Of a DNA stretch of 64,000 bases, positions 1-61,431 are shown one piece after another. Numbering within the stretch: position 1 is the first letter of the stretch; every line of letters begins with the position of its first letter. This stretch comes from Klebsormidium nitens. Its lineage: Eukaryota > Plantae > Klebsormidiophyceae. A program made the translations under genes and the position numbers. The stretch lies in assembly GCA_000708835.1 (NCBI GenBank), contig DF237046.1, positions 143,611-207,610 on the forward strand. The letters run 5' to 3'. The notes below the pieces were generated by a model. It was not told the origin of the DNA and did no database searches. It saw only the letters and a program-made list of their open reading frames with translations.

Positions 1-1888
1 GTGCTCTTGCAAGACGGCCAAAACGTGGTACAACACAGGGACGGAATACATTCTGCCGAAAACCCTGTCAGTACGAAACCAGATGATGGGTCCGCCGCAA
101 TCGGTCAGCTCACCTTGTTGTCCCCCAAGCGGAACCTGTAGAAATCCTTTTCAGACCCCTGCAGCCACAAGCATGTCGGGGGTGAGCGTCCAAACAGCCC
201 AGCCGATATTGCCCTTCGACTTGCCAAATGTGGAGTCCGCCAAGGGCCAGGGCAACGGAAGGCGCGCACGTTTGCAACAAGCGTTCCTTGGGATCTATCT
301 AAAAGATGTATCTAATCGTCTACGAATTACACAATCTTCGTAAGTCAGCCTTTGAATCTAGCAACTGAAGCTATCCAGCACAGGTGCGCTCAAACTCGTT
401 TTGGAACAGGTCGCACGATGCGCCCACCTCGAAAGAGCCTCCCCTCGACTTATTCCGAGCCTCGAAAGGGCGGCCCAAGTACCCGATAGTGTACCCATCC
501 CAGTCGACCTGAAAGACAGCAAGAAGGGCCTGTCTAGAAGGGCGGCAAGCCACATTTCGAGTGGGTGACTTGCCTCGAAAGAGCCACCTTTAGCCTTGTT
601 CCTTGCCTCAAAGATGCGGCCGTAGTAGCCAATGGTGTATCCATCCCAGTCAATCTGCAGACAGTGCATCGGGGAAAGGCTTTCCCAGCAACCCAGACGG
701 ATGAAAGTACATAATGAAGAGGTGCAGCTATTACTGAGGTGAAAAGGGAAACATGCTGCATCACAGCCTGGCAACCTGGAGAGTACTTTCGCATTTACAT
801 CAGTACTCAATACTCGTGTCCTTAATGGCAGCCAAGCTGCAGCAGGGATGCGTTTGCTCACCACGGCTACTTGCCCTTTCTTAGCTTGTGGTCCAAGCCC
901 TGGTTTCAACTCCTGCAGGGGTAGGGAGTCCAAATGTTGCATCAGAGTCCAGCTCAGTCCAGTAAACTACATTGAGCCACACAACATGCAGCGGGCATGT
1001 TGATAGCTTTCACATAACAACAAACCTGTCTAGAGCTGCATTTGCTTTCCCTTGCTTTCTTCAGATCCATACTCAAGCTCCCATGACTGTACTTTGGTAC
1101 AGGCCGGAAGACTGTGAGCTTGAAGCTGGGGCTTGCACAGAAGTCCACGATGGGCCTCCGTAACGGTTAGCCGTCATCAATCCTTGACCAAGCGGTGGTT
1201 CAAGTAAGTACCATCGAAGGTTGTTGAAGACTGCAGCCCTCAACAGTTGGGGAAGCGGGGCACGTGCTTACCTTGTACTGCAACCCGGTTTCAGTCAGGA
1301 TGTAGTCAGGACCGGCCCTCATCGCAGACTTACCGTAGTCTTTGCCTCGAATAGCGGGCACTGCACACGCAAAGAGCTATCATCAGATTTTTTTTCTGCA
1401 GAAACTTCCGCCATCCTCTCAGCCAAGCCAGTATCCAACCTTAAGAGCATCAAGAAAGATCACAAGTGCCATGGAGAGCTTGGTACAACGAGGACATATA
1501 GTACGGCAGTACAAAGGAGGGCGCCCGTTGTTTACTCACTATCGGTGAATTTCCGGTTTCCTTCAGCAGCATTTCCTTCAGCAGCATTTGCTCTTCCATA
1601 ATGAGCTGCAATTGCCGACGCTGCTGCCGCTAGCGCCAGCAACACCTGCCGTCTGCCCTCTGCGTGTGTAGCAATTGGCAAGGCGCCCTTCGCCGACTCG
1701 TCTTGCCTGCTGTCGGCTCTTACTGAGCTCACACCTTTTCTAGAACACTGGCTTCTCAGATGTACATCTAATGATGGTCCCTTAGATAAACGAGCACATT
1801 TCTCAAATCGTTCTGCCGCCGTCCTCAAGCATGATTGCTTTGGAAGCACAAACCTGGGGCCACCCAACGTTAGAGCATCCGAAGCCAT
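1..1888 (-). CDS. FKBP19: Thylakoid-lumen FKBP-type peptidyl-prolyl isomerase (FKBP19 orthologue); 3' end runs off the window
   Basis: Exon 1 encodes a bipartite transit peptide with twin-Arg motif (RRQVLLALAAAASAIAA..ANA). Spliced exons give MPAIRGKDYGKSAMR..PDYILTETGLQYK / ELKPGLGPQAKKGQVAV / (I|V)DWDGYTIGY.GR.FEARNK..GGSFE / GSEKDFYRFRLGDNK (114-158), matching plant FKBP19 as I recall it. Confidence 0.9.
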
Positions 1889-2080
1889 TCTGGGTCTGGG
1901 CTTGTCAACTCTTGACCAGCGGTCCCCACCTAGTCACGTCCAGAAACTCACGAGAGACCAAGTTCCATCTCCAGCTCTCTAGAGTCTAGTAGTAGATGCT
2001 GACGAGTGACAAGAGGTTTGCAGACGTGAAAGGACGTAGGTTTGCTAGTCTTACGATATGCGTCATTGATGATGTCACAC

Positions 2081-2311
2081 AGGGTTAACCTCCTAACGCA
2101 CACTAAAACCCTAAGGGTAATATTGAGCAGTAGCCCGGTTTTTAACAAACCCTAAGGCGTTCCGCCAGAGCGCACCCTTACCCACCCTAACCCCCCAGCT
2201 AACCCCACCAAGATCACAGGTTTGCCCTCATTGTAACCGGAATCTGCCCCGAGCACTTCACCGCACCCGGTGAAACCTGGCGGTACCAACCATACCGACA
2301 AGTACCGTACC
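2081..2311. promoter_or_regulatory. Telo-box-like (AAACCCTAA) cluster plus GTACCGTACC in the FKBP19/rhomboid divergent spacer
   Basis: aaaaccctaa at 2105, aaaccctaa at 2147, further accctta/accctaaccc/ctaacccc motifs, and GTACCGTACC at 2302. Confidence 0.45.
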
Positions 2312-2791: not shown

Positions 2792-5225
2792 ATGGACGGT
2801 GTCTACTTCTCTTCGATGGCGGCGGCCGCCTCAGCAGCTTCCGACTGCATCACTCGCAGTGCTTTCGTAGCAGCCACACGGCATTTTTTGAAAAACCATG
2901 AGCATCAGCTGCACACCCAGCAGCCTGATCGACCTTATCACTCCAGTCCACAGACGCAGAGCAGCTCCTGTGGTGGTGGAGGGTCTGGCATGTTTGGAGC
3001 GGGCGTCGTATTAAGCCGCCGACGGAGAGGGATGCAATGCCGTGCATCGAGCGGAAGGGAGGCCAGTTCACTGGATCAAAGTAGCAAAGCATTGGTGCCT
3101 GGGCCAATGTCATTCGGACTATTGCGGTTAAATTGCGGGGTTGCGGCGCTAGGTGTTGCGACCATCGGTATGGCAATTCAAACCCCATTTTGCTTCTTCT
3201 GCCGGCTGACGTGATCTTTCTGGATGGCTCCATTTTTTGACCATTGATGGATTAGTGATGCCGCGGGGAGAGTCCTCTTTGCAGAATGTACAGCTCTAGT
3301 TGCTCATCAGAGTTCGTTTCAATTGCAGTACTTGCTGCGCTTAATCCTAGCCTGATGAGGCAGCTGCTCGGTTGCAGGAAGATCGAAGTTAGATGTGACT
3401 CGGGGGAAGGGACGGTCTAGCAGCTCTCGCCGGGAGTGGGAGAGGTCTGAAGACCGGGAGCCCCATATCCTGGAAAGGCTGCTGGCACCGTTCAGGGATC
3501 GGGGACGTTTCTGGACCAACGTGTTCCTAGCAGCGAATATTGTGTAAGTGACAGCCACGGCCCTTGTACAGTCTCTAAACTGTTTAGCAGAGCCTTCGAA
3601 TATTCCCCCGCGGACGCTTGCTTAGCATCGATTCACATACTTTTCGAGAAGCACGTCAGCCGGCTCCTGTCCAATGTGCCTGGTTGAGTTTGTGCCAGTG
3701 GTTTCTCCAGTCAAAGCTAACCGCAAACATGTCACGTTGTTGCCCTTACTACAAGACGTACTATAAAGCAGGCATCCACCCCACTGTCTTTGCAGTGTCT
3801 TCATGGGCCAGCTGGCCTTGGGGAGCGATCGTGTCGTGATGTGGGGCGCAAAAGTGAACGAGTTCATAGACCAGGGACAATACTGGCGCTTCATCACGGC
3901 AAATTTCCTTCATTCTGGAGTCAGCCATCTGCTGGTGAGGGGCAAGTGAAACGGCGTAGTAGACTGCATGAATGTCCAAACAGAAATAAGCCAAGGATTT
4001 CACAATAACCGCACGTTGTGTAATTTTGTGTCATTTCTCAACTCGAGTGTCTCATGTTCAGCCCTGTTACTCATAGCCCGTCTGAAATGAAGTTTGCAAG
4101 GCAAGAAATCAATGGTGCCTCTTTGGAAGCCCCAAAGGACTCCCTCTTTCTCCAGATGAACTGTTACTCGTTGAACAACGTTGGCCCATCCTGGGAGCGC
4201 ATTGCTGGGGCGCCCCGCTTCCTGACTGTGTATGCAGCGGCCAGCCTGGCCACTGTGCTGGCCAGCTACAGTTTCACCCCGCAGCCGTCCGTGGGGGCAT
4301 CGGGGGCCATCTTTGGACTGGTGAGATCGCTGCTGGGTGACGAGAAAGATGCATGATCAGAACGGTTTAGCGAAACAACGGTCCAGCAAGTTTTCTCTGC
4401 CGTTGGTTCTTTGACGGACCAGTCATGTCTAGCTGAAGAACCCCACAACGTTGCCACTTTCTCTAGGGAGAGAGTCGTGCACCGCTTGGCAGTTGTCCCG
4501 CTAGCAAGTCATTCGGCTTTAACGTTCTAGCGGCTCCTTGTCCTGGCCTGCAGTAGTCGGTCTTGTCTTACAGTGACCTTGCATAAAGGGACAGGGATTC
4601 AAGTGGACTGAATTTGTGCCCAGGTGGGGGCCCTGACCGTGTTCTCCTACCGGTACATGCGCCTCTTTCGGAGCGGGGAAGGCCGCGAGCTCTTCAACTC
4701 GCTCGTGCGCACTGTCGCTGTCAACGCCCTCCTTGGGGTGGCCATCCAGCGCTGGGACAACTGGGGCCATGTGAGCATACCAGCAGTGTACGGCCATGAG
4801 ATTGAAAATGCGGACTAAACACTTTGGTTCATCGTTGGCCTCAGCATTGCTCGTGATGGCACCATAAAGGTCACATGGTCAGCGTCAGCGTCCTCCGCTG
4901 GTCAGAGTCCGGCGGTGTGGGGCATGCTTGGGTCAGTCAGACATCTCTTTGATGTGAGCTGATGAAATAGAATGGCATGTCTTTACAGGCAGGAGGTTTC
5001 CTCGGCGGAGCAGCTGCAGCCTGGATCCTGGGGCCTTCGTATGAGGTGAGGAAACCAACTTCGAGAGTGTTGTTCATCAAGCGAGGGCCTTGGACAGCTT
5101 GCTATATGGATAGGGCGGTCTTGTACTCCGATCGCCCAGGAATCTCGGGGCTACTAGCTTCCATCTTTAAAGTAATTGTTTGGGTCAACAGGGCCGATTG
5201 CACAGGGGCTGCAACAGGTGTCTAG
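2792..5225 (+). CDS. RBL10: Rhomboid intramembrane serine protease, plastid RBL10-like (about 6 exons)
   Basis: Exons give RFWTNVFLAANIV / MWGAKVNEFIDQGQYWRFITANFLHSG / PSVGASGAIFGL (catalytic GASG) / DNWGH|AGGFLGG (catalytic His). N-terminus is Ser/Ala-rich and transit-peptide-like. GT-AG introns keep the frame. Confidence 0.88.
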
Positions 5226-6938
5226 AGTGCCAGACACTTTTGCAGTGCTTGTCGCAGTCCACTTTGCAGGATGCGACCATTTTATGCGTCTACTTCGACC
5301 CATTTTGACAGCGCTTCAGGGCCTTTAGTGTTTCAATTGGATGCGACCATGTCTTCTCAATCCTGGCCAGAAGTCATCATTCGGTCTGGTCCAGGTTTCC
5401 TTGCCCTAGAATAGCATCTGGCGGTTTTTATCACAGTAGGCAACAGCTCTTCACGTCAAGCATCAGAGCTGGTCATTGTTCATTGTCGTGCAGGTGAACT
5501 ACTATGCGGGTTTGATGGTAGACCGGCCACCCTTAAGAAGGCTACTGGATCAATTTGATAAAAGCAACGGGAAGAAAGATACGCCGCTGTGATAACAAAT
5601 ATCTTTAGCAGTAGGTCTTGTATAATATCGCAAATGTTGCCTCAAGCTGAGGCAGGCAAATAGTACCGATCAGCAGCTTGCAATACTGCAGTCCCTTTAT
5701 GTAGAGGTGATCAACAGAATTGAAGCCACTACTGAAAGACGTTTACAGTTCTCTGAGGCTCGCTGGAAGATACCTGGAATATGAAAGTGTACATTGCAAG
5801 TACAAGTAAAGAGGGTCCCATGCGCCTCATGAGATCAGTCACGCCTTCCATTGCATGCGACTCCTTTGGTCGAAGAATTGCATTGTAAAAACCCACATAC
5901 ATGCATTGTTCGATAATCACAGCTGAAGCCGCGCTGCTTTGTCATGCAAGTCGAAGGGAATTATCGCTCCATTCGCTATAAGGCTTGTGCATGATCACAT
6001 GCATCGTCTTTACTCAAAGGTCGCAATTTCGCTTCGCCGCCATGCCAGCAATCTAGTGGCGGATAGACATAGCTAGCTGGATTGCAAATCTCAATTAACC
6101 GGTACGTGCATGCGGGCCACTGCAAGCGCATGCATTTGTGAAGGTTGCGCGCAACTTTGCCCGATGGCTCATGGCATGATTTAGGTATTGCATTACGCGG
6201 ATGGCCGACTCCCAATACATATACGAACCAATTTGATGGCCGATCTCACTAGGATGCACATGCAGGTCTTGATTTGACGCAGGCTCGCTTTATATAGTGA
6301 TAGCCACTGAGTTAACGCATAAAATGATGCACCGTCGTTCGAAATTGCCAACAGATATAGCCCATGATTTGCACCATTCGTAAAATTAACATTCAGCCTT
6401 TTAGTAGACATTAGAACCGTACCGTCGTAAGCTTATCATGATATCAGTTTATACAATTGGGCCCCATGCAATGGTTGGCCGGTGGCCGGGCAGCTAGATT
6501 AACACATGCTCGCCAGGATCGATCATTCTGAGGTTCATGCAAATTGCTTCTTGATCTGCTATGCAACTCGATGTATCATTATACCAGCGAAAGACTGCAT
6601 TTAAGAATAGCACACAGATGTGTGTAGTAGGCAAAGCAGATTACATGTGCTTGCGACCATAATAATCGCAGTCTCTGCATCATACAAAATTGTAGCATCC
6701 TCAGGTTTTATATCTGCTTGTACACAACGGTTCAAATTGAGTTTTCAGTAGGAGGAGGCTGACCACCTCCGGATCCTTTTTAAGTTTACTGTCATATGTA
6801 CACCTACTACTTAACCACCATATGTATAGAAGTTCTAATAGGATCCGCAGATCTGTCTCTCGAGATATGTCCAGGAATGTCCGTTTATTATCCACAAGGC
6901 TAATGTGCTGCCGCTCATTTGCCAGCCGTACTGGAATC

Positions 6939-9900
6939 TTAGTGTTGGGTTTCCGACGAGCTTGATTCCGACTCCAGCATGGCCCATCCCTCATCTTCAA
7001 TTTCCCCTTGGTCGAAGTGAGGACCGACCTGCTGCTGGAAGACCCCCAGGTATTGGCTGGTCAAGTTGCTCGGAGAAGGGCCATACAGGCCCATGTGAAG
7101 AGCCTGCGCTGACCCTACATCAAAGGCCTCCTGGCTCTCGACAATGTTCGAAGCAGTGACCCCGCCTTGGTTCTCCCGGTCTGCGACATAGTTGCTCGCA
7201 TCTCCTCCCGGAGCCTGGCTCAGTCTCATGCTACTGTTGGTGGACTGGAAGTTGGACTGAGCAGACAGCGACAGGAGTGACGGGAGCGACGACTGCAGGG
7301 AATGCTCACTGTCCCCTGCGGTGCTGTCGGAACTGGGGATAACTGCTCGAGGGTGCCCCTCAGCGTGGTCGATGTTTCCTGCCGGTGATCCCCCCTCGCT
7401 GGCAGAAGCGGCACTAACTTCCGGGTGGTCCGTGTCAGCCTCTGTTTGCGGCACCGAGAGAGTTTCTATCTCTGCAGCTCTGCTTAAGATGGTTTCTCCT
7501 TGAGAATGCGAGGAGCGGCGTAAGGCAGACCCTGCCTGGCCGACAGTCAGAAACGACGACGGCGCGAGCGGGCCGCTGAGCCCACTGCCGGAGGCCAGCC
7601 GCTCAACAGCCGCCAGGTCCTCACGGAGCATGGCCACCTCAGCCCTGCATAAGACATGCGCCGTTAGACAACGCGTTCACCAAAATAATCTCAAGGCAAT
7701 CTGCCGTGAGAAGGCCTCATAGCAGTACGAACGAACAGCAAGCAGCTAGAGATGCATGTGACGAGGCAGGTCAACGGGTCTCCTGTTCAACGACAAGCAG
7801 AAAAGCAACTCGGCGCACCACCAAAATGCCTGGTTCACGAGGCTCACAGGGCTGACTCAGCCCAACATTTCAGCAAAGCATACCAAGCATTATGAGGATA
7901 GAACAGTGCGAGCATTTATGGACCAGGTTGCTTACAGCATGGAATCCACCATTGTTCCTTTCTCCATGATGAAGAGATGCAACTGCGAGGGGAAAGAAGG
8001 CTTTGTCATATAGGACGTCCTTCACACAGTCCTCAAATATCTTTTGACTTTGCAAAGCGTAAATGAGACAGCATGGTCAAGAAGACCGTCTTTGATTTGC
8101 AGATGACAAGCTCGAACGTTTGAAGCCCCGCAACCATCATCACTTTTGAATGCTTACAAGAAGCTGATATACCCAAGATGGTCCAAATTCATGCATGATC
8201 GAAACAAAGCGCTTCTATCTGAAGATGGGAATCGAACCCTCAGTAGCCTGACCGCTACGACCATGCTCACCTTGTTGGCCTCAGCCTCTTGTCTATCAAG
8301 GTCCGCCTTCTCTACTTCTGCCTTGTCCAACTTGGTTTGCACAACCTCAAGCGCTGCCTGGACCACAGCCCGTCGCTTGGCCGCTTCTGCGTCGGCCAGT
8401 ACAATGGCAGCCTCTGTGGCCCCCATCCTCTCACGCAGGCCCACTTGCAGCTGCAGGTCAAGTCACATCAAGAACTATAAGCTCATGTGTTGGTGGGGGG
8501 CGCTTTGAGGAGCTTACCATAGGCTGCTCTTCTGTATTTGACCATCAGCCAGCTTTCCCCACATGGTTGCAAAAACCCGGTAGTGGAAACATAAGCATGT
8601 GCGACACTTAAGCTGGCATCAGCAAAGGTGTGAGAGGCGCTCTAATGTAGGTGTGAGAGGCACTCTGATGTATGCCGGGTCCAGAAGAGGGTTGAAGAAT
8701 TGACCTCTATGGAGAGGCACCTCGAAAAAACTGTACATTACCCAGACTAGACACCATTAATGCCCTTTGGCGAAGTGGATTCTTCAGAAGGAATGCCCTT
8801 ACGTGCTCCAATGTCGTCCTGATGGCCCTCCTCTCCTCCTGCAGGAGGGCCAGATTGCGGCGCAGCTCCTTTGCCTCCGTTCCCAGCATTGCCAACTCTC
8901 CATGGACCTCCCCGGACCGCCGCTCATTCTCTTCACTTAATCGGGCCACTGCTTGCTGGGTTTGCTCCATGTGGCGCTGCTCTGCATGTCCTGCCACATT
9001 GGCTCTATCCCTGGCTGCATCCAGCTCGACTTCCAGTGCAGCTGCAGTGTTGCGCATCTGGGCATAAGCCGCGAGTTCTGCAGCCAGTCTCTCCTGCACG
9101 TTCCAGCGAGGAGGACAGGTCTAAGACTCAACCTGAAGGATTGAAGACTGAAGGCTGCCATAGTCGACCACCTGCCCTACATGAGATGCAAGCAAGGTAT
9201 GCTGGTAACATTGTCCACAGAAGGTGATCATCAAAAGGAGTTTCCAGCAAGTGCATGACATGACCAGATCGTCAGGAGGTTAGAACAAAGTACAAACTCA
9301 AGGAGGATGCAACATAGTTAGTGAACAAATGACGACGCGATTGGCAGACCAAGGTCACATCAAAGCCAGCTGTGAAAGGAAGGGCATATGAAAGGGGAGG
9401 GCCAGAAAGAAAGGGGCACCTGTCAGTGGTATTGCTTACCTTCTCTTGCACTGACTGTTGGACGAGCATCTCCAGAGTAGGAGACTGTCCTTGGGCAACT
9501 GTCTCTTGGCTACCGTGAAGAGTCCTCTCTTCAGGGGGTTCTATCCCCCTGACAGCCTCTTCCAAAGGGGCTTCCTCATGATTCCTCAGCGGCTCACTTG
9601 AACATACAGCTGGCCCCAAAAGCCCCTCAGGCGGACTTTCATGGGAAATATGAGCCTCAACATCCTCTGCCGAAGTCTCGGCGTCTAAGCAAGTGGACTG
9701 GTTCGCAGCCAATGCTGCTGCTTCCAGGTATGGGTTCCAACTGTCGAGAGCATTGGTCCCAGTCTCCTGAGAGGCATCGTGACCACTCTGAAGTTCGTCA
9801 GTCCCTGCTCCAGCGGAGGGACTACGGGTTTCCAACGGCTGACCTGCAAAACATCCAATACTAGAACACTCAGTAAACAAAGCAATGAACAAACGCAAGC

Positions 9901-10571
9901 GATTTTGAGCACTTGCAATGGGTGGACCAAGAGCTTGACAAGCTTCAAAGAGAAGCTCTGTAACATGGCAGGCTTTTAAACCATGGCAAAAGTTGGTATC
10001 ACATAGACTACGGTTCAGAATTGCTGAGAGATCATTTTTGTTCTGCAGACCTGAGCATGCTTCAAAGAGGCACTTACCTTCACTGCCACGTGACAAGCAT
10101 GCAGGGTTCTCATGTACATGCGCTTCAGATGCTTCGCAAGCCAGAAAGAACGCAGCATCATCTTCATTCAGAAACCGTTCAGCTGCAGCACGAACGACGG
10201 TCCTGTCCAACTGCAGAGGAAGAAGCAAAAGATGAGGCAATCGCCTCCCCAAGCTTCTCTTATATTATTTGTATTAACAAGAAGTTGTGAAAAGCCTTGA
10301 TGCTTGCAAACATGAGGTAACATACTATCCACAGACGTTTTCACTGTACATTCACCAAGAACACACAGCTCACGAAACTGTGATAACAAACGGCTGAAAG
10401 GAGGCAGAATAATGCTGCAGAATGCAAGACGCTACAGAGAATATTCCTCAGAGTGGAAGGACGTACCTGAGGAAAGCTTTCTCGAAGCCCAGCGTAAATG
10501 ACACGCCATTCCGCCATTCCGCCACCTTGAAACCTTGCTAATATGTCCTCTTCAAAACTCCGACTTCGCAT
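6939..10571 (-). CDS. N-terminal CUE-like domain plus long coiled coil (plant ELKS/Rab6-interacting/CAST-annotated family)
   Basis: IYAGLRESFPQ|LDRTVVRAAAERF resembles a CUE domain (FP motif). GEVHGELAMLGTEAKELRRNLALLQEER matches the conserved coiled-coil segment of the plant family. Some internal exons are unresolved. Confidence 0.65.
8626..8671. repeat. 23-bp tandem duplication in a CUE-gene intron
   Basis: aggtgtgagaggc(g/a)ctct(a/g)atgt x2. Confidence 0.85.
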
Positions 10572-19400: not shown

Positions 19401-19751
19401 AAACCACAGTGCCTCCTTGACAGATCTTTCACCGCACTTCTACGACGACAGGAAACATTAGGTCAGCTCAAGGAGTGAACTTCCTCAAGCCTTCGATGGT
19501 TGACTTTTCAAAGGATTTCTGAGCTCAGTGCAGCGGCTGCATCTGCGGCCCAGAAACCTTCCCTTCTAGCCTTGCTCAATTACCTCGTAAGCGTTGAGCT
19601 TGATCGGCCTTCCGAGTCTCCTGCCTAGCTCTTTCTTCTTCTTCTTCGCGTCGGAGGCTATGATGCGGGATGGATCCAGCTGGCGCAGCCCAAACATTAC
19701 ACAGGACACACATAACAAGCCGACAACCGACGCTATCAGAGTATCCTGCAC
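16493..19751 (-). CDS. MSP1: MSP1/ATAD1-type membrane-anchored AAA+ ATPase (first coding exon not located)
   Basis: N-terminal TM segment then [33 protein letters not shown], Walker [19 protein letters not shown], Walker [34 protein letters not shown]. Confidence 0.92.
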
Positions 19752-40760: not shown

Positions 40761-40780
40761 NNNNNNNNNNNNNNNNNNNN
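40761..40780. other. Assembly gap (20 N)
   Basis: N run; gccaatgccagcaact is present on both flanks. Confidence 0.99.
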
Positions 40781-46900: not shown

Positions 46901-47201
46901 CGATCTGCACATCCACCAAGGAGAGAAATGGCACAATCAGTCTCCACTCTGGACAGGCAAACCTGCACCCAATCTTTCCTGACCATTCATGCATATTGGC
47001 ACCAGATTATGCATCTGAAACTCCATTGCTCTCACAATGTAACTCAGACGGAGCCCTTCTGTAACGACTTACCTTCTCTCCCCTCTCAATCAGTTTGACG
47101 GCCACCATCTCCTTTGTCCGTTTGTCACGATAAAGCTTTGCCACGCCAAAGTTGCCGGACCCAATGTCTTTGATTGGCTCATATCTATCTGATGAAGCCA
47201 T
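43979..47201 (-). CDS. SnRK2: SnRK2 kinase with acidic C-terminal tail (9 exons)
   Basis: [92 protein letters not shown], SnRK2 box [14 protein letters not shown], tail [22 protein letters not shown]. Confidence 0.97.
45137..45220. repeat. 42-bp tandem duplication in a SnRK2 intron
   Basis: gacaggtcagcaaggttgattctaaccatt(t/a)gccagacactc x2, one mismatch. Confidence 0.9.
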
Positions 47202-47943: not shown

Positions 47944-47948
47944 ACGAG

Positions 47949-48666: not shown

Positions 48667-51600
48667 ATGAGCAAGAGCCGTCTGAGCAGCTTCGCAAGAT
48701 TCATGTTCACTGCTGCACCTCTTCATGAGCCTGTCCTTGCCAGGTATGCAGCTGTGATTCTTAAGGCCATCTTCTTTAGATAGCAGGACTGTTTTCCCTG
48801 TACTTGCTCAACACCATGAACAGTCGTTCTGTACTGCAGGCCTACTGCTCCTGCCGTCTGCATGGGGGCAGGGGGCAGCCACCTGAGCCCCGCTGGTCAG
48901 GCTGCTGCTGCCCCTCCTGCTGGCGGCCAGGGGGCAGCGTCCTCTCGCCGCACCCTTCAGGATGGCCCCAGGAAGCTGGCGCGCCCCCTCATCTCGCGTG
49001 GCCCGCGAGGGGCGGGGGGGCTGCTGTCGTCGCTGTGGGGCGGCTTTGCTCCGGAGGCTGCAGCCCCGCCCGCAGCTAGTGACACTGAGCCAAGGGAGCT
49101 GGCAGCGGACTCGCGTGTGTGGGCCTTCACATACGAGGATGCGGGGGGAGGGCCCGATGAAGACAGAAAGTGAGCTCTTGCACTTCGCGTGAAGGCCGTC
49201 CGTGCCGCGGAGCTGGGGCTGTATGACAATTGTGTCAGAAGTGCATTCTCTGCGCTTCGAGGGCCAGGGCTGCTCCGCTTCGGAGGGGTGGGCTGCTCCG
49301 CTTCGGAGGGGTTCATCTCTTAGGCCCCACAGATGAGACGAACGTGCTGAGCCAGAGTATACTTCACAGCGCCTCCTAACCCCCACCGCCACTGTACAGC
49401 ACTAGTCTGTTCCGGCCGCCGCTGGTCAGCGCTGCTCTTTCTGGCGCACAATTCATGTCTGCTCGCTTGATCATTCCTGAGCTCCTCCCCCCTCTTCTCC
49501 TTGACCCCCCCTCCCTGCCTGCAGGTACCTGGTGTGCCTCACCAGTGCGGCCGCGCGCCTGGAGGCGGTGGCCCCCCTTGGCACGCTGCTGCTGGTGAAC
49601 GTGGGGTCGCTGCTGCTGCAGCCGGGCCTGTACTCGCTGTTCCACAACAACGTGTGCGAGCTGGGCGCCCACTGGGACGTCCCGCGCGGAGCGGCCGTGG
49701 CACCGCTGGACCTCCTCTTTGCCGCCTGCGCCTCCATGCAGAACTGGTGAGCGCCACAAGCGCCCCGCCAACAATTCCCAGACGAAGCCAGGTAGCGGCC
49801 GAGTGTTGCGGGTTCACTGTCAGTCATGCTCTAGTGGGGCTAACTTTTCGTGGACATGTTAGCAGGACGGTTTCGCCACTCCCATCGTGGTCCTTGCCAC
49901 CTCGCTCGTTAGTGCGGCCCGACCTTGACAGCTGTGCTCGCCCCCCGCTGCGCAGGCTGGCCATTGACGACGACCACCTGGCGGTGCTGCACACGCGGGG
50001 TGCGCAGGACTTGGGTGCGGGCTCCTTCCTGCGCTTTGTGGCGGCGTGCTACCTCACGTTCAGCGAGGAGTTTGACTTCACGGTGGAGGCCCTGCAGGAG
50101 CTGCCGGTCGCACCACTGCGCAGCGGGCCTGCTTGGGCGTCCCACCGCCGGGGCAGCCCCAGCGAGGGCGCCTTTGGCACCGCCACCGCTGCACAGCGCC
50201 GCTACTGCCAGTACTTCGACATGCTGCACAACAAGGTGAGAGCGCGGCGTGCAAGCAACAGGGGCGGACGAGTAGGCGGCTTGCCGCTTGTTTGAAATTG
50301 AAGCTGCGAATGCTTGTCCTGAAGAGAAGGTAGGTGACTGTCTAGATTGCGCCAGGGAGCAGACTGACGGCTTTACCACATGCTGCACGAGCTGCACGAA
50401 GTTGCATCGTGGCGCCATCAGCCTGGAGTTACGGGGCCCGCTGCCATTGATCTCACTTTGGACTCGGTGCAATTGCATCGAGTCCTTGAAGCGACCCGAG
50501 ATCTGCAAACGGTCTCCTAGAAGGGCGCTTTCTCTCTGCCTACCGGAAATGGCCGCCTGACCTGCGCCCAATGCACCGTGTGCGTTCAGACCATGCCGGC
50601 ACGGCGCATGGGCGCGCTGCACCTGCGGCAGGTCATCCTGAGTGCTGCGCCGGGCGTGGATGGCCAGGGCGGCTGCCGGCCGTATGTCAAGGTCTTCTGG
50701 AGGGGGCAGGAGGTCAAGACCAGTGCGCCCGACCGCCAGGTGAGCCGGGCCCGCCTGCAACCAGCCGGGCGGAGGCCCCGCCCCTGGGGCCAGTCTGCAG
50801 TGCACGTTAACTGTGTGGTAGGTGATGCCTGCACACAGAAGCAGGCGTGAGGCCGTTAGTCTTGTGCATGGAGGCCTGCGAGCGGCGGCGGTGGGTGGCT
50901 CAGGCCGGGTTCCCCTGTGTGCAGGTGCCCGCCAAGCACACGGCGGCATCGGGGTGGCAGGTGCCGTTCGAGCTGGGGGTGGAGGTGCAGGGGGACGTGG
51001 CCATCACGGTGCACCACTACACCGGTGAGCGGCCGGGGGATGGGCAGGGTAGGGCACGCAGGGAGCAGCAGCCTGGTGGCGCAGAGTCCAGTCTGTGAGA
51101 TATTCAGACGAACGAGGAGTTGCAGTGTCAAGCGGGCGAGTCCGATAAGTTCCCTCGTCCGGGATTTACGTGTGACTGACAGGACGGCAGAGTGGAAATA
51201 TCCTTCTTGGCCTTGCGCGCTTGTCCGTGCCTGGCGTGCTCCCCTGCTCCGGGCGCCTCGCTGACGCCCGCTGCGCTGCCTGGCTGCAGGCGACATCTGG
51301 GCCGACGACCAGCTGCCCCTCCTCGTCTACGCCTTCCACACCGCCTTCACTGAGGCCGGCCTCGTGCGCGTCCCTCGTGCACAGGTAAGCCCCGGGCCCC
51401 CGCGAGCGGCCGCGTTCTGCTGGCCTCTCTGCCCGCCTGTCTCGGCCCCGCCTCGTCTCCGCTTCCTGCCTGCCGTGCTGACGCTCCGGTGGGCCCGCGC
51501 GTGGTTGCAGCTGGACAGCGCATACGGAGGCGCACTGGAGGTGCCCCCCGACTTCTTCCTGGACATGATCCTGGAGCCGTCCGCGGCCGCAGTGCACGCG

Positions 51601-54600
51601 CGCGCGGGGGTGGGCCGGGTCAGCCAGGACGGCGACCTCGACACGGACGGGCCCGACTGGAAGGACCTCCTCCTGGCAGGCACGCAGCATGACGCACCCG
51701 CGCACACCGCAGCGCAGGTGCGCAGGAACCGGGCTCACGCGAGTGGGCTACCGTGGGTCATTGGGCCACTCACAAGCTGGTTCGGTCTTCTAGTTGTCAG
51801 CGTTGTGGGTTGAGCCCGTGCATCGAGGCTGTTTGTCAACTTCTTCATCTCTCAGATAAGTTGTATTCTTGTCAGACGTGGCTTTCCCTGTACCGCCAGC
51901 ACTGGCTGTGCTGCTGCCTGAGAGCCTCCCCGCTGCTCCGTGCTGCGCAGGAGAAGGGCCGCCGGCAGCAGGCCGTGATGCGCAACGTGATGAGTGAGAT
52001 GAAGGCCGGCTTCGCCAGCGGGGGCACATCGGCCCTCCTGCGCAGGACGCCGGAACGGAGCCCCTCCAAGGCAGACGCCGACACGCCCACCTCGACGGCG
52101 CCGGATGCACCACCCGGCACAGAAGCGGGGCACCCAGCTGACGCCAGCGGGAGCGCTGGCGCGGGGCGCCTAGAGCCCGCCGACATCCCCAAGTTCGTGC
52201 CCCCGCCTCCCGCCGCCGCCCCCCCCTCGCCCCTCTACGTCGCCTCCTCCCCCACCTCCGCCGCCACCCGCCGACCCCCGCCCCCTCCGCGAACTATCCG
52301 GAGCACCGCCGCCTGCGCCCCCTCCCCCACCTCCGCCCCCTCCTCCGGCCCTAGCCTCCGGCTTGCCGCGCCCGCCGCCCCCTCCCCCACCGCCCAGGGG
52401 TCCAGGGCCCCCGCCTCCGCCCCGCCCCCCTGGCGCGCCCCCTCCGCCTGCGCGCCCTGGCGCCCCACCCCCTCCTGGGAGGGGCGTCCCGGCCCCCCCT
52501 CCGCCTGGGCGCGGTCCTGCTCCCAAGGAAAGCTCCACACGCGGCCTGTACTGGGCCAAGCTGCTGCGAACGGCGGGCACCATCTGGGCGGACGTGGCCG
52601 CAGAAGGCGACAGCGAGGCTGCCCTGGGGGGACCGGCGGGGGTGCGCGCGCTCGAGTTCCTGTTCCGCAACAAGGCCAAGAGGGGCACAGCAGGGGCCGC
52701 GGCGGAGGCGGTGGGCAAGCGCGGGCGGCGGGAGTCGGTGGTGAAGCTGATCACGGTGACGCGCGCCAACAACGTGGCCATCATGCTCACGCAATTCAAG
52801 GTGAGCAGCCCGCCCACGCCTCGCGGCAGCCACGGGGCACTGCTGAGTCCGCATCCCCAGGGGGCTCACAGTCGAGTGCGTGGTGCCAACGACTGTGTCA
52901 CTGACGCGGGCGGGGCCTGGTTGCTTCGCAGATGCCTGCGGGGGCTGTGCGCGAGTGTATCTTGCGGGGGGCCGAACCGTCGGGGCCGGGCGCCGCCCTT
53001 TCGCTCGAGAAGCTGGGCCTCCTGCTGCAAGTAAGACCACGCCCTCACTGTCCGTTGGCCTGCCAGATCAAGGACGGGGCATCGGAAGCCAGCCACGGCA
53101 GGTTTGCTCTCGCCGCTTGGCGCGCTTTGCCACATGCTCGCTGACGACAAGCGGGGAGAGCATGTCGCGCTGTGCTGTTTTGGGTCTGCTCCGTGCGACA
53201 CGTATTCGGAGTCCCCGCTGCCCCCTCGCTTGAGCGCACCGCGGGCCGTGTGGCGCTGTGCAGGTGATCCCCACGGAGGACGAGGTGGCGCTGCTGACCC
53301 GCTACGAGGGGCCCCCCAGCGAGCTGTCGGCGCCGGAGCAGTTCCTGGCCACCATGGCGCAGGTGCCGCGCCTGCGCAACAAGATCCAGGTCAGCGGGCA
53401 CTGCTCACGGCCTGCTCGCGCGCGGGTGACCCCGCACAGCACCACGCTCGCTCGTCCTCTGGTCCCTGATGGGGCCGGTCGTCTTGAGGCACTCGCCGGG
53501 CGAAGCGTCCCTCTGATGGCCTCCTCTTGCGCTGCGCAGGTGTTGATCTTCACTCGCCAGTTCGGCGGCCTGGTGGCCGACACCGCGGTGGCCCTGCGCA
53601 CAGTGCGCCGCGCGTGTGCACAGGTGCGCGAGAGCCACCTCCTGCGCCGCGTGCTGGCCGCTGTACTGGCAGCGGGGAACCACCTGAACTCCGGGTCCGC
53701 GCGAGGTAAGAGCAGCGCCCTCTTGGCACCCATCACCGAAGTACCGCTCGCCGGCATTGCTGCGTGCGTGCTCTTACCGCTGGAGGGGCTACCCCGCTGG
53801 CTGGGGCCGCCACGTCCCATCTGTGTTGCCGCGCGGAGCGGCACCCTCGGGCCTGACCCGCGCTGTGCCTTGCAGGCGGCGCGGCCGGCTGCACCCTGGC
53901 GTCCCTCGCCAAGCTGGCCGACATGAAGGTGGGGCCCCCGCACAGCTTGCTGCTGCAGCCTCTCTTGCGCTCTCTTAAGGTCGGGACAGCCTGTTGCACG
54001 TCTGTTGGAAATTGGCGCCACTCTGGTCGTCCTTCTCCTCGGCGCCGCTGCTTGCCGAGTGACTGCTGGGATGCGCCTTCTGCAGGCGACCCCCCCCGGC
54101 AAGGACGAAGCGCCCGTGGGCGCCGTGGGGCCCGCGGCCCGCGCGAGCAGCCTGCTCGAGTTCGTGGCCGCGGCGGTGGCGGCCGGTGGCGCGTCATCGC
54201 AGGGGGGCCCCACCGAGCTGGCGGTGGAGCTGGGGGCGGTGGGGGAGGCGGCGCGCTGGACCAACGCCGCGCTGCTCGAGGCGCTCGCCGCCGTCGACCG
54301 CGGCCTGGCCGCCATCGCCGACGAGTGCGCCGCCTGCGCCCCACGCGCACCACCAGCCGCTGGGGAAGGCAGCGCCGCCGCAGACCCCCCAAGCGAGAAG
54401 GGAAGCGCGGGGGCGGAGGAGGCAGACGGGGCGGAGGGCGGCGCCAGCGAGGCCGGGTTTGCGCGGCAGCTGCGCACGTTTTTGGCCGGGGCGGAGGTGC
54501 AGCGCGGGGAGCTGGTGGCGCTGGCGGACGCGTGCCGCGCCGACTTCCAGGCCCTGGCCACTTACCTGGGAGAGCCGCCAGCGACCGCAGCGCCGGAGGT

Positions 54601-54902
54601 GAGGCCGCGCAGCAGCCGCACCCGCGCAGAGAGAGCGAAGAAAAGGCTGCAGCACGCGGAACTCGTGCACAGCTTTCATCTTGTTGGAGCGGTGACGGCC
54701 TCTGCCCCGCCTGAGCGGACCGCCTTGTCTCTGCTGTGGGCGTGCATCTTGCCCCCTCTTGTCCCGTGTGCCGGCCCGGGTGGCACGGCTGACGCCGGCG
54801 TGCTCGTGGCTGTTGCCGCAGGAGGTGCTGGGCATGCTGTGGGCGTTCGCGGTGCAGTTCGACAAGGCCGCACGAGAGCTTCACCCGCCCCCACACAAGT
54901 AG
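48667..54902 (+). CDS. Class II formin (PTEN-like, C2, FH1 poly-Pro, FH2); apparent frameshift at the start of FH1
   Basis: PTEN-like QNW|LAIDDDHLAVLH..AQRRYCQYF, C2 GGCRPYVKVF..VQGDVAITVHH..YAFHTAF, poly-Pro at 52200-52520, FH2 LYWAKL, RANNVAIML, PTEDEV..EQFL, VLAAGNHLNSGSAR|GGAAG..LAKL. Confidence 0.9.
49267..49311. repeat. 22-bp direct repeat in a formin intron; each copy holds a small CTCCG-ctt-CGGAG hairpin
   Basis: gggctgctccgcttcggagggg x2 separated by 1 nt. Confidence 0.85.
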
Positions 54903-56149
54903 GCCGGCCATCCGCAAGCTCCCGCGCCATCGCTGACAGGGTCGTCACTAGCCAACGGGGGTGGCCGCCCCCGCGCACGATCCTTCCCCCCGTCGAGCTG
55001 GCGTCTCCGCGCGGCCACACCGGCCTCGGGCTCACCGGCTGCCGCCTCAGCACAGGGCGGACACGAAGAGATGCCACAGGTGGGGGGCCAGGAACTCCTG
55101 CGCAATGGACAGCCCAACGCTCTCTTTTGAAAGACTCAAGTAGGCCAGGGCAGCATCGTGTGGCCTCTAACAGGGCGCCTCATAGCCTCCCCACACAAGG
55201 GACGCTGGTGTACCGGGTGCCTTTTATTGGGATGTGACATCTCGTCACGATCAGCACCCAAAAGGCCAGCTGGATCACGTTCTCCGGCTGCAAAGTAGAT
55301 GACAGTTTTGCGTTCGGCAGATTTGCCCGCTTGGATGTCCGCCAAGACACTTGCCTGAGACAGAATGCAGAAGCAAGGGTAGCTGCTTGTTGCGGTCGTG
55401 ACACAACTGCACATGACCGCCGAGCAAGATGATGGCACTAGGGGTCTCCTCGAACTTGTACTAGCATTGCGGGCTGACCTGGGCTAGAGCTATACGTTGG
55501 CCAGGATGCATTGCCTGTTGCGCGCATATGTGTTCGACAGCCCTCCAACATGTGATCCTCGCACATACTGATGTTTTGTCATAGATGGCCAGATCCCCTC
55601 TCAGAGATAAGTCGACAAGCAAGGTACTTGTCATCCGGGTTATCTCAATCACCCATGAACATGATAGCGCACTTGCAGTGTGTTCTTCAGATTGACAATC
55701 ATCTCTCAGCTAGCCTGAGAGCTCTATACCTAGCTCGCACTTTGGGATTATTATCTGCAGTAACCTATCCGGGGTTCGTACTCTATCCAAGATTTGTCCT
55801 CTATGCGGACTTGCTTGTCTCTATGAAACTCGCTTTACAATATGGAAAAGAACAGCAGAGCGCGCTAGTTCTCCTGACAGCCTTGCGCTGACGGATTCTG
55901 TCGACACCTGTACATCAGTTAGCAGCAACAAAGACTTCATGTTGTTTCTCGACAGATTTTCCGTTCCTCGTCCCAATCAACTGTACAAGAACGACAACAA
56001 TCATCTACATCGGAATTGCGCTCGCGCCTGAGTGCTTGTGCAAAGCTGGAACAGTCATGGCGTCCTCCAGGTACCAGATCAAGGCCTACCGCATCACTCT
56101 TCCCAACGCGACTTTGTCCGTCGGAGCCTGATGCCGCTACTTTTGGGCC

Positions 56150-57950
56150 TCACGCAATCTCAGGATCGTCGATACTGAGCCACTTGCGGTATCGCTCCAG
56201 CGAGTACTCAATTTTGCCGCCCGCATCCTTCATGACCTGGCCAAAATGCAGGGCGGATCCAATCATGTGCACCAAAACTCGAGGACACCTTCCAGGCACC
56301 AACACCTCGAGCAGCGGGACCCCAGCATACTGCGAACATCTCAAGTAGATTCATCGGAAGAACATCCTTGACTGATTCTAGAAGCATAACATTCACCGTA
56401 CTTCAAATTGGGAGTGCACATAACAAGCAGGCAAGAGATCCTCCACAACTACCAAGGCCGAGGCTGCTCTTCCCTGCCACCCTGCATCAGCCCTTGTTCC
56501 CGCTCTGTTCTCTGTGTGTAACTCATTCCGTGGCCCGTTTGCAGTGGGCGGTGTCAGCTGACCTGGTACCAAAAGGCCCCGTAAACGGTGCGATACGGCG
56601 GCAGGCGCGCCATCCGGGTCTGGATGCGCGCCACTGTCGCATCCGAGAGGGGGATGAGGCATGGGTACGAGCGCATCACCCCCACCGTCTCACACCCGGG
56701 GTTGATCTGCGCGCAAGGGCCAGCAGCACGGCAGGTCAGCCCAGTGGCCCCTCGAAGCGCCCGTGTCTCTGCTTGCACACCACTCTTAACTGCTGAATAC
56801 CAGGATGCCACTGTGAGGACTTCGTGATGTCCAGCACAGATGATGCCAGACGATCAGGCCGTGTGACCATCACCAGCGGGCCTCATTGGGGGTGGTGCAT
56901 GCATTGCCGGCGCCCAGCGCTGCCCACCTGGATGATGTCCCCCACCAGCAGGGCACCCTCCCCGCCAGCCCCGGCCTGCCAGTGGCAGATCTGTGCACCC
57001 GCAAAGTGTCCGCCCCTGCAAAAAGAAAGCTGGCATTGGAAGTGCGTCCCAGCAAAGGACGAGGGACAAAAGACCTGGTACATTTTGCCAGATCACACCC
57101 CTTAGGAGGCAACTCCTGTCCAGCAATGACCAGACGATGTGCACGGCAAGGCTCACAGGTGCCAAAGGGAGAGGCCCCCAAAGAGGGGCTGCTGATCCCC
57201 CTCCCAGAAGTGGAAGTGCTCCGCAATTGCATCAGGGCGCACAGCCTCCACCCACGCCCTGCATCACATCAAGGCACGGTCAGACGGCCTGCGGCCGGGG
57301 CTGGAGCAATCCGCAGCCAAAGGCACAGGCACAGGGAAAGGGGCAGGCAGGAAAAGGCAGCGCCGCAGCGCGGGGGCAAGTGGCAAGCAGGCTGGGGGGG
57401 TCTAGGCGGGGGAGCAACTTGCCCCAGGCTGTAGAATGACTTCTTCAGGCGCGCACCTTTCTTTGGTGTGGATGTAGATGGGTGCGCTGAAGGCCCGGCT
57501 CCACTCCACGCAGGTGGAGTAGTAGTGCGGGTGGCTGATGGCAATTGCCTTGATGCCCCCCAGCGCAGTCACAATGTCGCGCGTCGCGCCATCCAGCAGC
57601 GCAATGCAGTCCCACAGCAGGTTCCCCTCCTTTGTGCTCACCAGCAGCGCCCGCTGGCCAATCCCGCTCTTGGGCTCCGTCCCAATGCCCAGCAGCTGCG
57701 GCTCCATGCGCTGGAAGGCGTTGCGGTGGCCGCTGCCCAGCTTGGCCAGCGTGGTCCAGCGCTGCCCGCTCTGCGGCACGTACTGGCGCTCATCCGCACA
57801 CACAGGACAGTTGCCAGGTGGGGGGGTGGCGGACGGGGCGTACTGCACGTTGCACGTCTCGCACACAAAGCATTGCAACTCTGCGGGCCCTGAATCAGGC
57901 AATGCGTCTGCCAGGACGGGGGTCAATGCCGTGTAGTCTGATGCCGCCAT
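56150..57950 (-). CDS. Metallo-beta-lactamase-fold hydrolase with N-terminal CxxC...CxxC (bacterial YmaE-like family), 5 exons
   Basis: VCETCNVQY..CPVCADERQYVP.SGQRWTT, GIGQRALL, NLLWDC, IAISHPHYY, FWEGD..L|GGHFAG, GALLVGDIIQ, MRSYPCLIPL, VYGAFW. Confidence 0.85.
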
Positions 57951-58237
57951 GCCGACCAATGTTCGGACAATCAGGCAGGGGACCAATGGCAATGGCAAGA
58001 TGATGGAGACAGAGAAGCAAGCTGGAACTGTATGTGGCGTTCTGTGCAAGGCTCCGAGTCAGAGCTGCAGAGTCGAGTCTGGAGTCTCGGCTGCTGACCG
58101 AGTCTCCGTGTCACAAGTTACAACTCATGAACATTCTCAGGAACCGGAATCCTGATACGCAGGAACTTTACTCCAGCTAACTCTGCTCCAGCTAATCCCT
58201 GGCCGATTTCTTGAGCCAGCGTGGCAATACTTTCACA

Positions 58238-58688
58238 GTACCCCGGGCACGGGTTACACCGAGTAATACGTACGAGTACCGAGCAATGAGCATGGAGAAG
58301 TCTGCGTACTGAGTGCGAGGAGTCAGAGGGGTTAAGACTTGGTTAGGGAGTTGAAGCAGCGGTTTAAAGTATATCATGTGAAGGACTGGATGTTGATACT
58401 ATTAAACCATGTAGTACCTTTATCATGTCGATCTTGCTCGCGCTCGAGCCGAGTCGGGGTCTTCCATTTCATCCCCGGTAATTTGGAGTCTCGTCGGTAA
58501 GCCAGCGTGGCAATATGCTTTTATGCGATTGGATATGCGGTCAGCAGTCAAACCTTAGGGGTAGGTACCCGGGGGCCAGACATGAGCCTGGCCGGACCAA
58601 CCGTGCCACTTTTCCGGTTCAGTGTCCCAACATTCTTGACTTGCGTTGCACAGAGTACCGTAGAGCCACGGTATCGGGGTACCGTACC
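58238..58688. promoter_or_regulatory. GTAC cluster in the MBL/Gly-rich divergent spacer
   Basis: 9 GTAC, including GGTACCGTACC at 58678. Confidence 0.45.
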
Positions 58689-59003
58689 TACAGAGTAGCA
58701 GTCCTACCTGGGCGCATACTCCACTGCCCAGTTGGAGTCTTAGGTCCCACGTCGGACCTTTGAAATCGGGCCGGATCGGACTTAGCTGGAGTAAAGTTCC
58801 TTAAAGTGAATCCTGAGACTTCAGGGTGAACAACATCTGGGTGCTGATGGTATTTGTGCAATTGGTGGTGCCAGCAGCCAGAAACGGATAGGTAGCTGTG
58901 CAATGAGCAAGTTGACGAAGCCATGCTCAAGGGGCGCGCCGCGGATCCGCTTTGAGCAACGGTAGTCCCAGGTCGGTGGTGGTGCCCTGCCGCGGCTGTC
59001 CTC

Positions 59004-61431
59004 ATGGCACCCCCTGTTGCGGAGCCCCTTGCCCCTGCCCCCGCCCCCCAAGGCCCCCGGCTGAAGCTGCCACCGCTGTCCAATCCGTTCTTCTTTCAGA
59101 TCATGCCCATGGTGGGGGCGGGAATTGGGGTCGGCTGCGGCGTGGGCATCGGGTTCGGCAAGCAAGTCCCATTTGGTACGTACGATTGCAAGTGGTTTTG
59201 GTGGGGAGAGCAGAGGCCACCACCCATCTTTCGTTCTCGTCTGCCGTCTTGCTCTGCTGTGCTCCTCTTGGCCTTGGCAGCACAATCAGAACCTTAGCGC
59301 AGCTGTTGCAAAGCCCGCGCCTGGCTGCACCTGCTGGTCTCCCAGCTGCGAAATGCCAGGCCCTTGTGTCTGTCTCTTCCTGTTTGTGGCTGCCCTGTCG
59401 TTGCCCTCTCTCAGCCCCATTCTGGCACCCCCCCCAGGCGTGGTGTTGACTGCGTGAGCGTGTGCGTGCAGCGTCGCTGCCCGGCTTGGATGGCATTGCC
59501 AGCGGCGTGAGCCAGGTGGGCGGCCAGCTGCGCGGGGTGCGTGGCTTTGTCAAGAAGGGGGTGAGCCACGCCACACCCTAGCCCCGCACCGCTGGCCAGG
59601 ATGTTGCATTTGACAGGACGCTTTACAGACATGCTGGATTGTCCCCATGGTGCACGGTGTCCCCTCTTGTCAGAGCGCGGGCCAGTTGCCAGGCTGGCAT
59701 CCGTTTGGCTGCCTCCATGGTGGCCCCAGGGGGTCCAATGTCTCCCTGCGCTCAGCGGGGGGTCGCACCAGGCCCCCACGTCGTCTGGTTCCTCCCCGGG
59801 CTCCTGTTCTTTCCACCCAACCCTGTGTTGCGGCGGCCCCTCCTCTCCCCGCCACCGCGGCAGGCTCGCGGAGGCGGTGATTGCGCTGGCGCCGGCAAAA
59901 TGCCTGCTCCCGGCCACGCCAGGTACCATTCTTGCGCAGCATAGCAGTAGGGGCTTCTGACCAGTGGCGCGTGCACGTATGTGGTGCAGCTGGCCAAGAG
60001 CGGCCAGAAGAACCTGGACGTGGGGCTGGGCTGCGGGGTGGGCGTCGGCTACGGCTTTGGCGCGGGCCTCTTCCTGAAGCCGGGCGTGGGGGAGGGCCTC
60101 GTCGACAGCGCCAAGGCGGCCTGGGCCGGCGCACAGGAGCAGCTGCACACGCGCTACGGTGAGCGCGCCAGCCGCCGCGCAGGTGGCTCTTGTACACGAG
60201 AAGAGCATGTCCAGGGTACCCCCACGTACTAGCATCCTCTCTTAACGGAACCAGAAAGCTCTTGGGCTCATTGAGCTCCTGAGTAGTTGTGGAGCGCAGG
60301 CAATTGCTGCTTCTCACTGGCCCAACTGCGGTATAGTGGGGAAGGTGCTACTCCTCAGTCGGAAGCAGGAGAGGCACAGGGCCCCTTTCTCAGAGGGAGT
60401 CCCGACACTTGCCGAACATCAGGCACGGGTGAATCGTCGTGTTAGAGTCGCTACAGCGGCTTGCCCGTCCTGCAAGCCAGGTCATTGGAGGGCGGGCCCT
60501 TGGGTAGCCTGGGTGCGCCGGCATGGCATGGGAGGCCACCCGGGGCGGGCTCGTTGTCTTTGAAAACTTGGTGGCACGATTGGTGCAAGAGGCAAAAAAG
60601 GATGACAACACGAAGCGCCTCATTCCGGGCCGTCGATCAAGTATACTCGTGAAGCCGGCTAGGCCGCCTTAGCAAGCCTCTTTTACTTTTTGTGAGTTGT
60701 GACTCAGCAGTGAATCTTATGCTGCCAACCGGGTGTCCCATGAGGATGACATGACCCCTCGATGGGCAAGCACGAGCTTTCTCTTTTGCCTGGCAGGGCA
60801 CCTCCTTCCCAAAACCGGAGCCACAAATGCAGAGCCGTCGGCGGAAGTTGGAGCACCTGGCCCCACCATCGAGAATACGGGGGTGATCGGAGGCAGGAAG
60901 GCCGCAAATTCACAACAGTCTGGAGGAGCAGTGACAAGCGAAAGCGAGGGTGAGACAGTGCCACAGGAGGCAGTTAAAGCGGAGGGTGTAGCAGTTCCTA
61001 GAGATCCATTAACGAGGGCCGCGCCAAAAGATGTGGGTGCTACAGACCGGGGCCCAAAGGAAAGTAAAAGAAAGGGCGCAGTCACGAAGCAAGGAGATGC
61101 GGATAGTGATGAAGGGGCAAAGTGGTCGCCAAGTATGCAGCAGGATCAGGGCGGCCGTGGAGACACGGTTGCACACGCAAAAAGGAAAAGCTCCGGAGGA
61201 GAGCGGGACAAGGAACTGAATCGGCTGCAATTAGAGAATGATGTATTGCGAGAGACGTTGCGACAACGAGAGTTGATAGAGCACCTAGAGGGCGAGGTGC
61301 AAACGCTTAGAGAAATGCTTAGTGGCAAGTCCGTATGCAGCCGATCTAGGAGTCTTGGGCTAGGCACCACCCCTTCATTAGAGGATCTTTGTTTCAAGTG
61401 TCGGCGGGTAGCACTTGGAAGACGAAGGTAA
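59004..61431 (+). CDS. Conserved plant-type glycine-rich protein with C-terminal short coiled coil
   Basis: NPFFFQIMPMVGAGIGVGCGVGIGFG and NLDVGLGCGVGVGYGFGAGLFLKP repeats. The phase-1 splice from about 60148 to 60799 joins to LENDVLRETLRQRELIEHLEGEVQTLREML. Confidence 0.72.

Follow-up and report, generated by a model that had tools for sequence, protein, structure and literature searches.

Bidirectional promoters of animals and plants serve head-to-head genes whose transcription start sites (TSSs) are separated by <1 kb. Pairs of this type usually form a minority (~10% of human genes) and are scattered among tandem genes. In Ectocarpales, >60% of neighbouring genes are on opposite strands, the divergent spacers of Ectocarpus are far shorter than the tandem ones (median 409 vs 2,293 bp), and of the brown-algal genes that flank TSS-adjacent intergenic regions, 61.7% belong to divergent pairs (bioRxiv 10.1101/2024.02.19.579948; 10.1101/2020.03.09.980763). 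A survey of 64 species found ~50% co-directional pairs in most eukaryotes, the exceptions being Monosiga, Cyanidioschyzon, Thalassiosira, and Cryptococcus; Klebsormidium is outside its species set (PMC2871058). Neither the Klebsormidium genome paper nor full-text searches that combined Klebsormidium with terms for orientation yielded anything on gene orientation. Here we analysed a 64,000-nucleotide stretch of the streptophyte alga Klebsormidium nitens (GCA_000708835.1, contig DF237046.1, positions 143,611 to 207,610; hereafter, the window), in which 16 consecutive genes lie on alternating strands.

The original prediction, made from the letters of the window, had listed these 16 genes and proposed that the genome is built of bidirectional gene pairs. 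Gene number, order, and strands were confirmed by Pfam matches of exons, peptides and homologues, a codon model, and comparative evidence, and the strand switches at all 15 junctions. The genes form eight divergent pairs with seven convergent junctions between them; no same-strand junction occurs in the run, and the opposite-strand spacers measure 0.50–1.82 kb. The local architecture fits the predicted picture of divergent pairs and convergent junctions, and the prediction is partly supported, with the genome-wide rule and the shared promoters as its putative parts.

The run resembles Ectocarpus and other brown algae in its opposite-strand neighbours, in its many divergent pairs with short spacers, and in belonging to a genome that is not extremely small. 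It differs in that a genome-wide fraction has been measured in brown algae, whereas here a single 61-kb run was verified, in a streptophyte alga. With the bidirectional promoters of animals and plants, it shares the head-to-head arrangement (eight pairs, four of them with ATG-to-ATG distances of ≤0.91 kb) and CCAAT-type motifs (GCCAATG) enriched in the spacers. However, instead of a scattered minority, every gene of the run belongs to a head-to-head pair.

Genes of the run and evidence for their strands

The window is intron-rich eukaryotic nuclear DNA with a GC content of 50–70% and two assembly gaps (40761–40780 and 62198–62502). The 16-gene run is gene-dense, with ~3.8 kb per gene and an intergenic share of about one quarter of 61 kb.

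Pfam searches were performed exon by exon on single stop-free exons, with no joined spliced models. A codon model bootstrapped from the confirmed exons returned strand blocks in exactly the predicted gene order. For the comparative strand test, we used indel-free alignment stretches whose substitutions fall in one codon phase, and the strand was read from the stop-free frame. Two Logan contigs of a relative (SRR23617307) were collinear with the window at 2.8–25.7 and 36.8–61.5 kb with ~77% DNA identity, and this comparison placed genes 2–7 and 10–16, the six lacking a Pfam name among them, on the strands expected. For a more distant relative, represented by a JGI metagenome contig (L002), collinearity spanned 33.9–42.9 kb and four genes. 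Its alignment was limited to exons of APC2 (−), TANGO2 (+), gene 11 (−), and VPS29 (+), with protein-level conservation on those strands. Thus, gene order and orientation are kept for 14 genes in a sister alga and for four genes in a more distant one, as the proposed synteny check had asked. Protein searches with exons of VPS29, the CUE gene, and FKBP19 returned proteins of relatives, none identical to the window; the nearest were transcriptome models with 98% identity. The genes are as follows.

Gene 1, 1..1888, minus strand: FKBP19-type lumenal peptidyl-prolyl isomerase; start codon at 1888, 3′ end truncated at position 1; FKBP peptides in minus frames, RR-type N-terminal signal; homologues named FKBP19, chloroplastic.
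Gene 2, 2792..5592, plus strand: rhomboid protease (RBL10-like); Pfam Rhomboid, E 5.6e-12; third-position substitutions in plus frames.
Gene 3, 6939..10517, minus strand: large low-complexity protein, predicted as CUE; stop-free open reading frames (ORFs) of 245 and 330 aa; kept in the relative; substitution phase.
Gene 4, 12339..15181, plus strand: Ser/Thr protein kinase; Pfam Pkinase, E 1.1e-22; codon model; substitution phase.
Gene 5, 16493..19990, minus strand: MSP1/ATAD1-type AAA ATPase; Pfam AAA and AAA_lid_3; start codon approximate.
Gene 6, 20588..22847, plus strand: unnamed protein, possibly an outer-envelope beta-barrel; codon model; third-position substitutions in plus frames; terminal exon ~22691–22847.
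Gene 7, 23346..25384, minus strand: unnamed membrane protein, predicted as a plastid protein; codon model; substitution phase and stop-free minus frames; terminal exon 23346–23540.
Gene 8, 25940..28515, plus strand: PUX/p47-type SEP-UBX protein; Pfam SEP, E 5.9e-11, and UBX, E 1.2e-19.
Gene 9, 29661..35135, minus strand: APC2, anaphase-promoting complex subunit 2; Pfam Cullin and TPR_ANAPC2; 5′ exons conserved on the minus strand in L002.
Gene 10, 35995..37450, plus strand: TANGO2; Pfam TANGO2, E 3.8e-29; four plus-strand exons kept in L002.
Gene 11, 38137..40036, minus strand: unnamed protein, predicted as cyano-like; five blocks conserved at the protein level in L002; substitution phase; ATG at ~40036.
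Assembly gap, 40761..40780, no strand: 20 N between the divergent genes 11 and 12, in non-coding DNA.
Gene 12, 41214..42927, plus strand: VPS29 (retromer); ATG at 41214; signature peptides across exons; five exons conserved in L002.
Gene 13, 43979..47201, minus strand: SnRK2-type kinase; ATG at 47201; kinase subdomain peptides; Pfam Pkinase; substitution phase.
Gene 14, 48862..55237, plus strand: PTEN-FH1-FH2 (class-II-type) formin; stop at 54902 or 55237; Pfam PTEN_C2 at ~50.6 kb and FH2 at 52.5–53.9 kb; continuous substitution phase.
Gene 15, 56150..57950, minus strand: metallo-beta-lactamase-fold-like (MBL-like) protein; ATG of the first exon at 57950, end of the terminal exon at 56150; substitution phase.
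Gene 16, 59004..61431, plus strand: glycine-rich protein with a coiled-coil tail; two exons sharing a G-x-G-C-G-V-G type motif; codon model; substitution phase.

The predicted identities held for FKBP19, rhomboid, kinase, MSP1, PUX, APC2, TANGO2, VPS29, SnRK2, and formin, while CUE, MBL, cyano-like, plastid, and beta serve as leads or tentative labels. A Pfam search of exons of genes 3, 6, 7, 11, 15, and 16, with long ORFs of the first 12 kb, returned nothing significant. These six genes (CUE-like, beta-barrel-like, 'plastid', cyano-like, MBL-like, and Gly-rich) are supported by the codon model, by protein conservation in the distant relative, and by third-position substitutions. The N-terminal exon of gene 3 bears a CUE-like FP motif. 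Atlas matches to OEP/porin-like clusters for gene 6 and to Lactamase_B-bearing clusters for gene 15 serve as leads, and the MBL-like exon of gene 15 matched nothing in a Pfam or PDB sequence search. Gene 11 had no significant Pfam match, ABA_GPCR (E 0.066) falling below its cut-off.

Since PTEN_C2 (+) lies upstream of FH2 (+), the plus-strand block at 48.9–55 kb is a single class-II-type formin gene. The last exon of gene 16 (~60.8–61.43 kb) follows a splice acceptor and lacks a start codon; therefore, this region was read as one gene, which is collinear with the relative up to 61499. A strongly conserved block at 19572–19751 (98% identity with the relative) corresponds to the N-terminal membrane-anchor exon of MSP1, and VPS29 homologues at 98% identity have metallophosphoesterase domains. 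In the FKBP19 gene, the exon for the DWDGYTIGY..GR.FEARNK..GGSFE segment is tandemly duplicated (~428–654, minus strand), with the copies in different reading frames.

Spacers and their motifs

From the first to the last divergent pair, the ATG-to-ATG spans of the eight head-to-head spacers were 0.90, 1.82, ~0.6, 0.56, 0.86, 1.18, 1.66, and 1.05 kb, and the stop-to-stop spans of the seven tail-to-tail spacers were 1.35, 1.31, 0.50, 1.15, 0.69, 1.05, and 0.9–1.25 kb. The predicted start-to-start distances of 0.55–0.9 kb were therefore found in four of the eight divergent pairs (0.56, ~0.6, 0.86, and 0.90 kb), where the TSSs must be <1 kb apart, provided that the first coding exons are correct; the remaining pairs, at 1.05–1.82 kb, lie outside the predicted range. 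With ≤0.91 kb from ATG to ATG, these four spacers can accommodate no more than a compact promoter region, probably a shared one.

The spacers of all eight divergent pairs were without coding signal or conserved block in the codon model and in the distant-relative and substitution comparisons, and no conserved coding block or coding-type substitution was found in any spacer covered by a relative; small genes or non-coding RNAs that are not conserved may be present. No tRNA gene or Rfam family was found in the window. Codon bias is weak in the first 13.2 kb, and there ORFs of ≥45 aa were searched against Pfam by strand. The plus strand gave Rhomboid and Pkinase (genes 2 and 4) and a sub-threshold UBZ_FAAP20 (E 0.0019), and the minus strand gave no match. 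Two conserved patches (22.69–22.85 and 23.35–23.54 kb) were candidates for an additional gene, but their codon phase of substitution, acceptor site, and stop codon identify them as the last exons of gene 6 (+) and gene 7 (−). A further patch (56.13–56.22 kb) proved to be the terminal exon of gene 15 (−).

Most spacer centres could not be aligned to the close relative, whereas introns aligned. The spacers at 5593–6938, 10692–12213, 15244–16343, and 55132–56085 gave no SRR23617307 alignment at a blastn E of ≤1e-5, while introns of the flanking genes aligned. From this comparison, spacer turnover seems faster than intron turnover. The head-to-head spacer of genes 15 and 16 measures 1,053 bp in the window (57951–59003) vs ~285 bp between the matching blocks in the relative (L003, 16842–17127), a large indel in the promoter region.

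The 20-N gap lies inside a non-coding spacer, and so no reading frame is affected. A near-identical 19-base GCCAATGCCAGCAACT-type repeat stands on each side of it (40733–40800), and the gap could mark contig ends that overlap or a short tandem repeat that was collapsed. Genes 11 and 12 are adjacent in both relatives, with 576 bp (L001) and 829 bp (L002) between them and no gene there, which supports continuity across the gap. The same alignment blocks are 622 bp (vs 576 bp in L001) and 1,198 bp (vs 829 bp in L002) apart in the window.

Downstream of gene 16, at least 2.5 kb of AT-rich DNA (42–44% GC; 61500–64000), including the 305-N gap at 62198–62502, showed no coding signal. The alternating run thus stops in gene-poor DNA, rather than at a tandem gene. 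Beyond gene 16, the relative is likewise AT-rich and non-coding (L004, 1–3400), with no alignment to the window there. An extension of the run upstream through a longer FKBP19-matching contig (L007) was discarded: it belongs to an unrelated organism with 35% GC and has no DNA similarity to the window.

The original prediction had also pointed to palindromic motifs in the two spacer classes. Motif densities per kb, counted on both strands, are given below for genic, head-to-head, and tail-to-tail DNA, in this order.

GTAC: 2.5, 6.3, and 4.8.
GGTACC: 0.15, 1.5, and 0.14.
TACCTA/TAGGTA: 0.02, 1.9, and 1.0.
GCCAATG: 0.15, 0.8, and 0.14.
CATG: 4.6, 5.0, and 10.0.
TGCA: 7.6, 5.0, and 11.7.
TGCATG: 0.8, 0.6, and 2.9.

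Head-to-head spacers hold 13 of the 21 copies of GGTACC, and GTAC copies in this class are mostly central. The 8-mer TGCACATG has seven of its nine copies in the 16-gene region in tail-to-tail spacers, spread over six of the seven such spacers. Motif content thus differs by class in the window, as predicted, and this difference was repeated only partly in the relatives. In the orthologous spacers, CATG and TGCATG were enriched in the tail-to-tail class, but TGCATG was equally enriched in the head-to-head class. Because the motifs were found by searching the same window in which they were counted, they are suggestive only. A role of TGCACATG as a conserved element of terminators was rejected, since it also occurs twice within coding exons (at 19747 and 56264) and most of its copies are missing from the spacers of the relative.

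Two further features of the spacer motifs were observed. The SnRK2/formin spacer contains a dense cluster (47550–47950) with most of its seven GGTACC sites and several GTAC cores. TACCTA/TAGGTA, which presumably resembles MYB-type AC elements, occurs, with both strands counted, once in the exons and introns that make up ~46 kb of genic DNA vs 23 times in 15.5 kb of intergenic DNA, often embedded in TTTAGGTA or GGTAGGTACC.

Chance, preference, or design

We consider it reasonably probable that the run is the local extreme of a genome-wide statistical preference for strand switches between neighbours, of the type known from brown algae such as Ectocarpus and from certain compact protist genomes. 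A mild preference of this kind would be enough to explain the run, and we favour a putative genome-wide switch rate of roughly 0.55–0.7 over both pure chance and a strict rule. In the mechanism we propose for such compact intergenic space, a single short promoter region free of nucleosomes would serve both genes of a head-to-head pair, and convergent genes would end against each other. No promoter would then lie downstream of a neighbour's terminator, so that read-through interference would be avoided and tandem arrangements would be selected against. The pairs would be units of layout, not of function.

Several results weigh against this preference. Under random orientation, a genome of ~16,000 genes, the number assumed in our run statistics, is expected to contain 0.25 runs of at least 15 switches, and one or more would occur with a probability of 0.22. 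The close relative is so similar to the window that collinearity with it is no sign of selection on the layout. In addition, GTAC was not enriched in the orthologous head-to-head spacers of the relative, and exact TGCACATG is kept in only two of its tail-to-tail spacers.

A more pronounced version of the preference appears doubtful. The layout would alternate more than in brown algae, with a switch rate of at least 0.7 in gene-dense regions and two sequence-defined spacer classes: a shared promoter rich in GTAC, ACCTA, and CCAAT, and a shared terminator rich in CATG and TGCA palindromes and readable from both strands.

It is unlikely that gene orientation is simply random (switch rate 0.5) and that the window is the longest run a whole-genome scan turns up. 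The value of 0.5^15 (~3e-5) attached to the run in the original prediction is correct as a local probability but ignores that the whole genome was scanned; with this taken into account, the above probability of 0.22 speaks for chance. Loci of other green algae are also compatible with it. Around FKBP19 in Closterium, Coccomyxa, Elliptochloris, and Myrmecia, 13 of 20 junctions switched strand over the four loci together, which is indistinguishable from a rate of 0.5. At the individual loci, Coccomyxa subellipsoidea showed six switches at seven junctions, and FKBP19 is head-to-head with MCM2 in both C. subellipsoidea (L009) and Elliptochloris bilobata (L010), a divergent pair conserved in these two trebouxiophytes. 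Alternation may be common in other compact green algae.

Equally unlikely, in our estimation, is the strict design, a genome of units in which one bidirectional promoter drives two co-regulated genes and terminators are shared, with a switch rate of ~0.8 or more. The unbroken 15 switches, the four spacers of ≤0.91 kb, the concentration of GTAC at the middle of the head-to-head spacers, and the class-specific palindromic motifs in the window agree with such a design. Against it, an assumed switch rate of 0.8 would give >100 runs of at least 16 genes, the partner genes are functionally unrelated, and the motif classes are poorly kept in the relative. The FKBP19/rhomboid pair, the one pair tested outside the lineage, is absent from Closterium, Coccomyxa, Elliptochloris, and Myrmecia, where FKBP19 has other 5′ neighbours; gene pairs were retained only within Klebsormidium-type relatives.

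An annotation artefact, in which some of the 16 genes are merged tandem genes or small spacer genes were missed and the alternation is broken, is very improbable: six genes have no family name and the CUE/kinase (1.8 kb) and SnRK2/formin (1.7 kb) spacers are large enough for a small gene, but the long blocks show single-gene domain order (PTEN_C2 then FH2; ANAPC2 repeats then Cullin), the conserved patches at 22.7–22.85, 23.35–23.54, and 56.15–56.22 kb are terminal exons of genes 6, 7, and 15, none of the spacers holds coding-type substitutions or conserved blocks, and the ORFs in 1–13.2 kb matched only Rhomboid, Pkinase, and the weak UBZ_FAAP20.

If the bias is weak or absent, the window is only the tail of a random distribution. 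If the more pronounced version with two spacer classes holds, a streptophyte genome would be organised in promoter–terminator modules. If a genome-wide bias exists, Klebsormidium, which is close to the ancestors of land plants, would be the first known streptophyte alga with the alternating layout seen in brown algae, an indication that moderately compact genomes have been selected convergently against tandem neighbours. Algal engineering could then draw on its many short, natural bidirectional promoters and its paired terminators, and transcriptional interference could be tested in this system.

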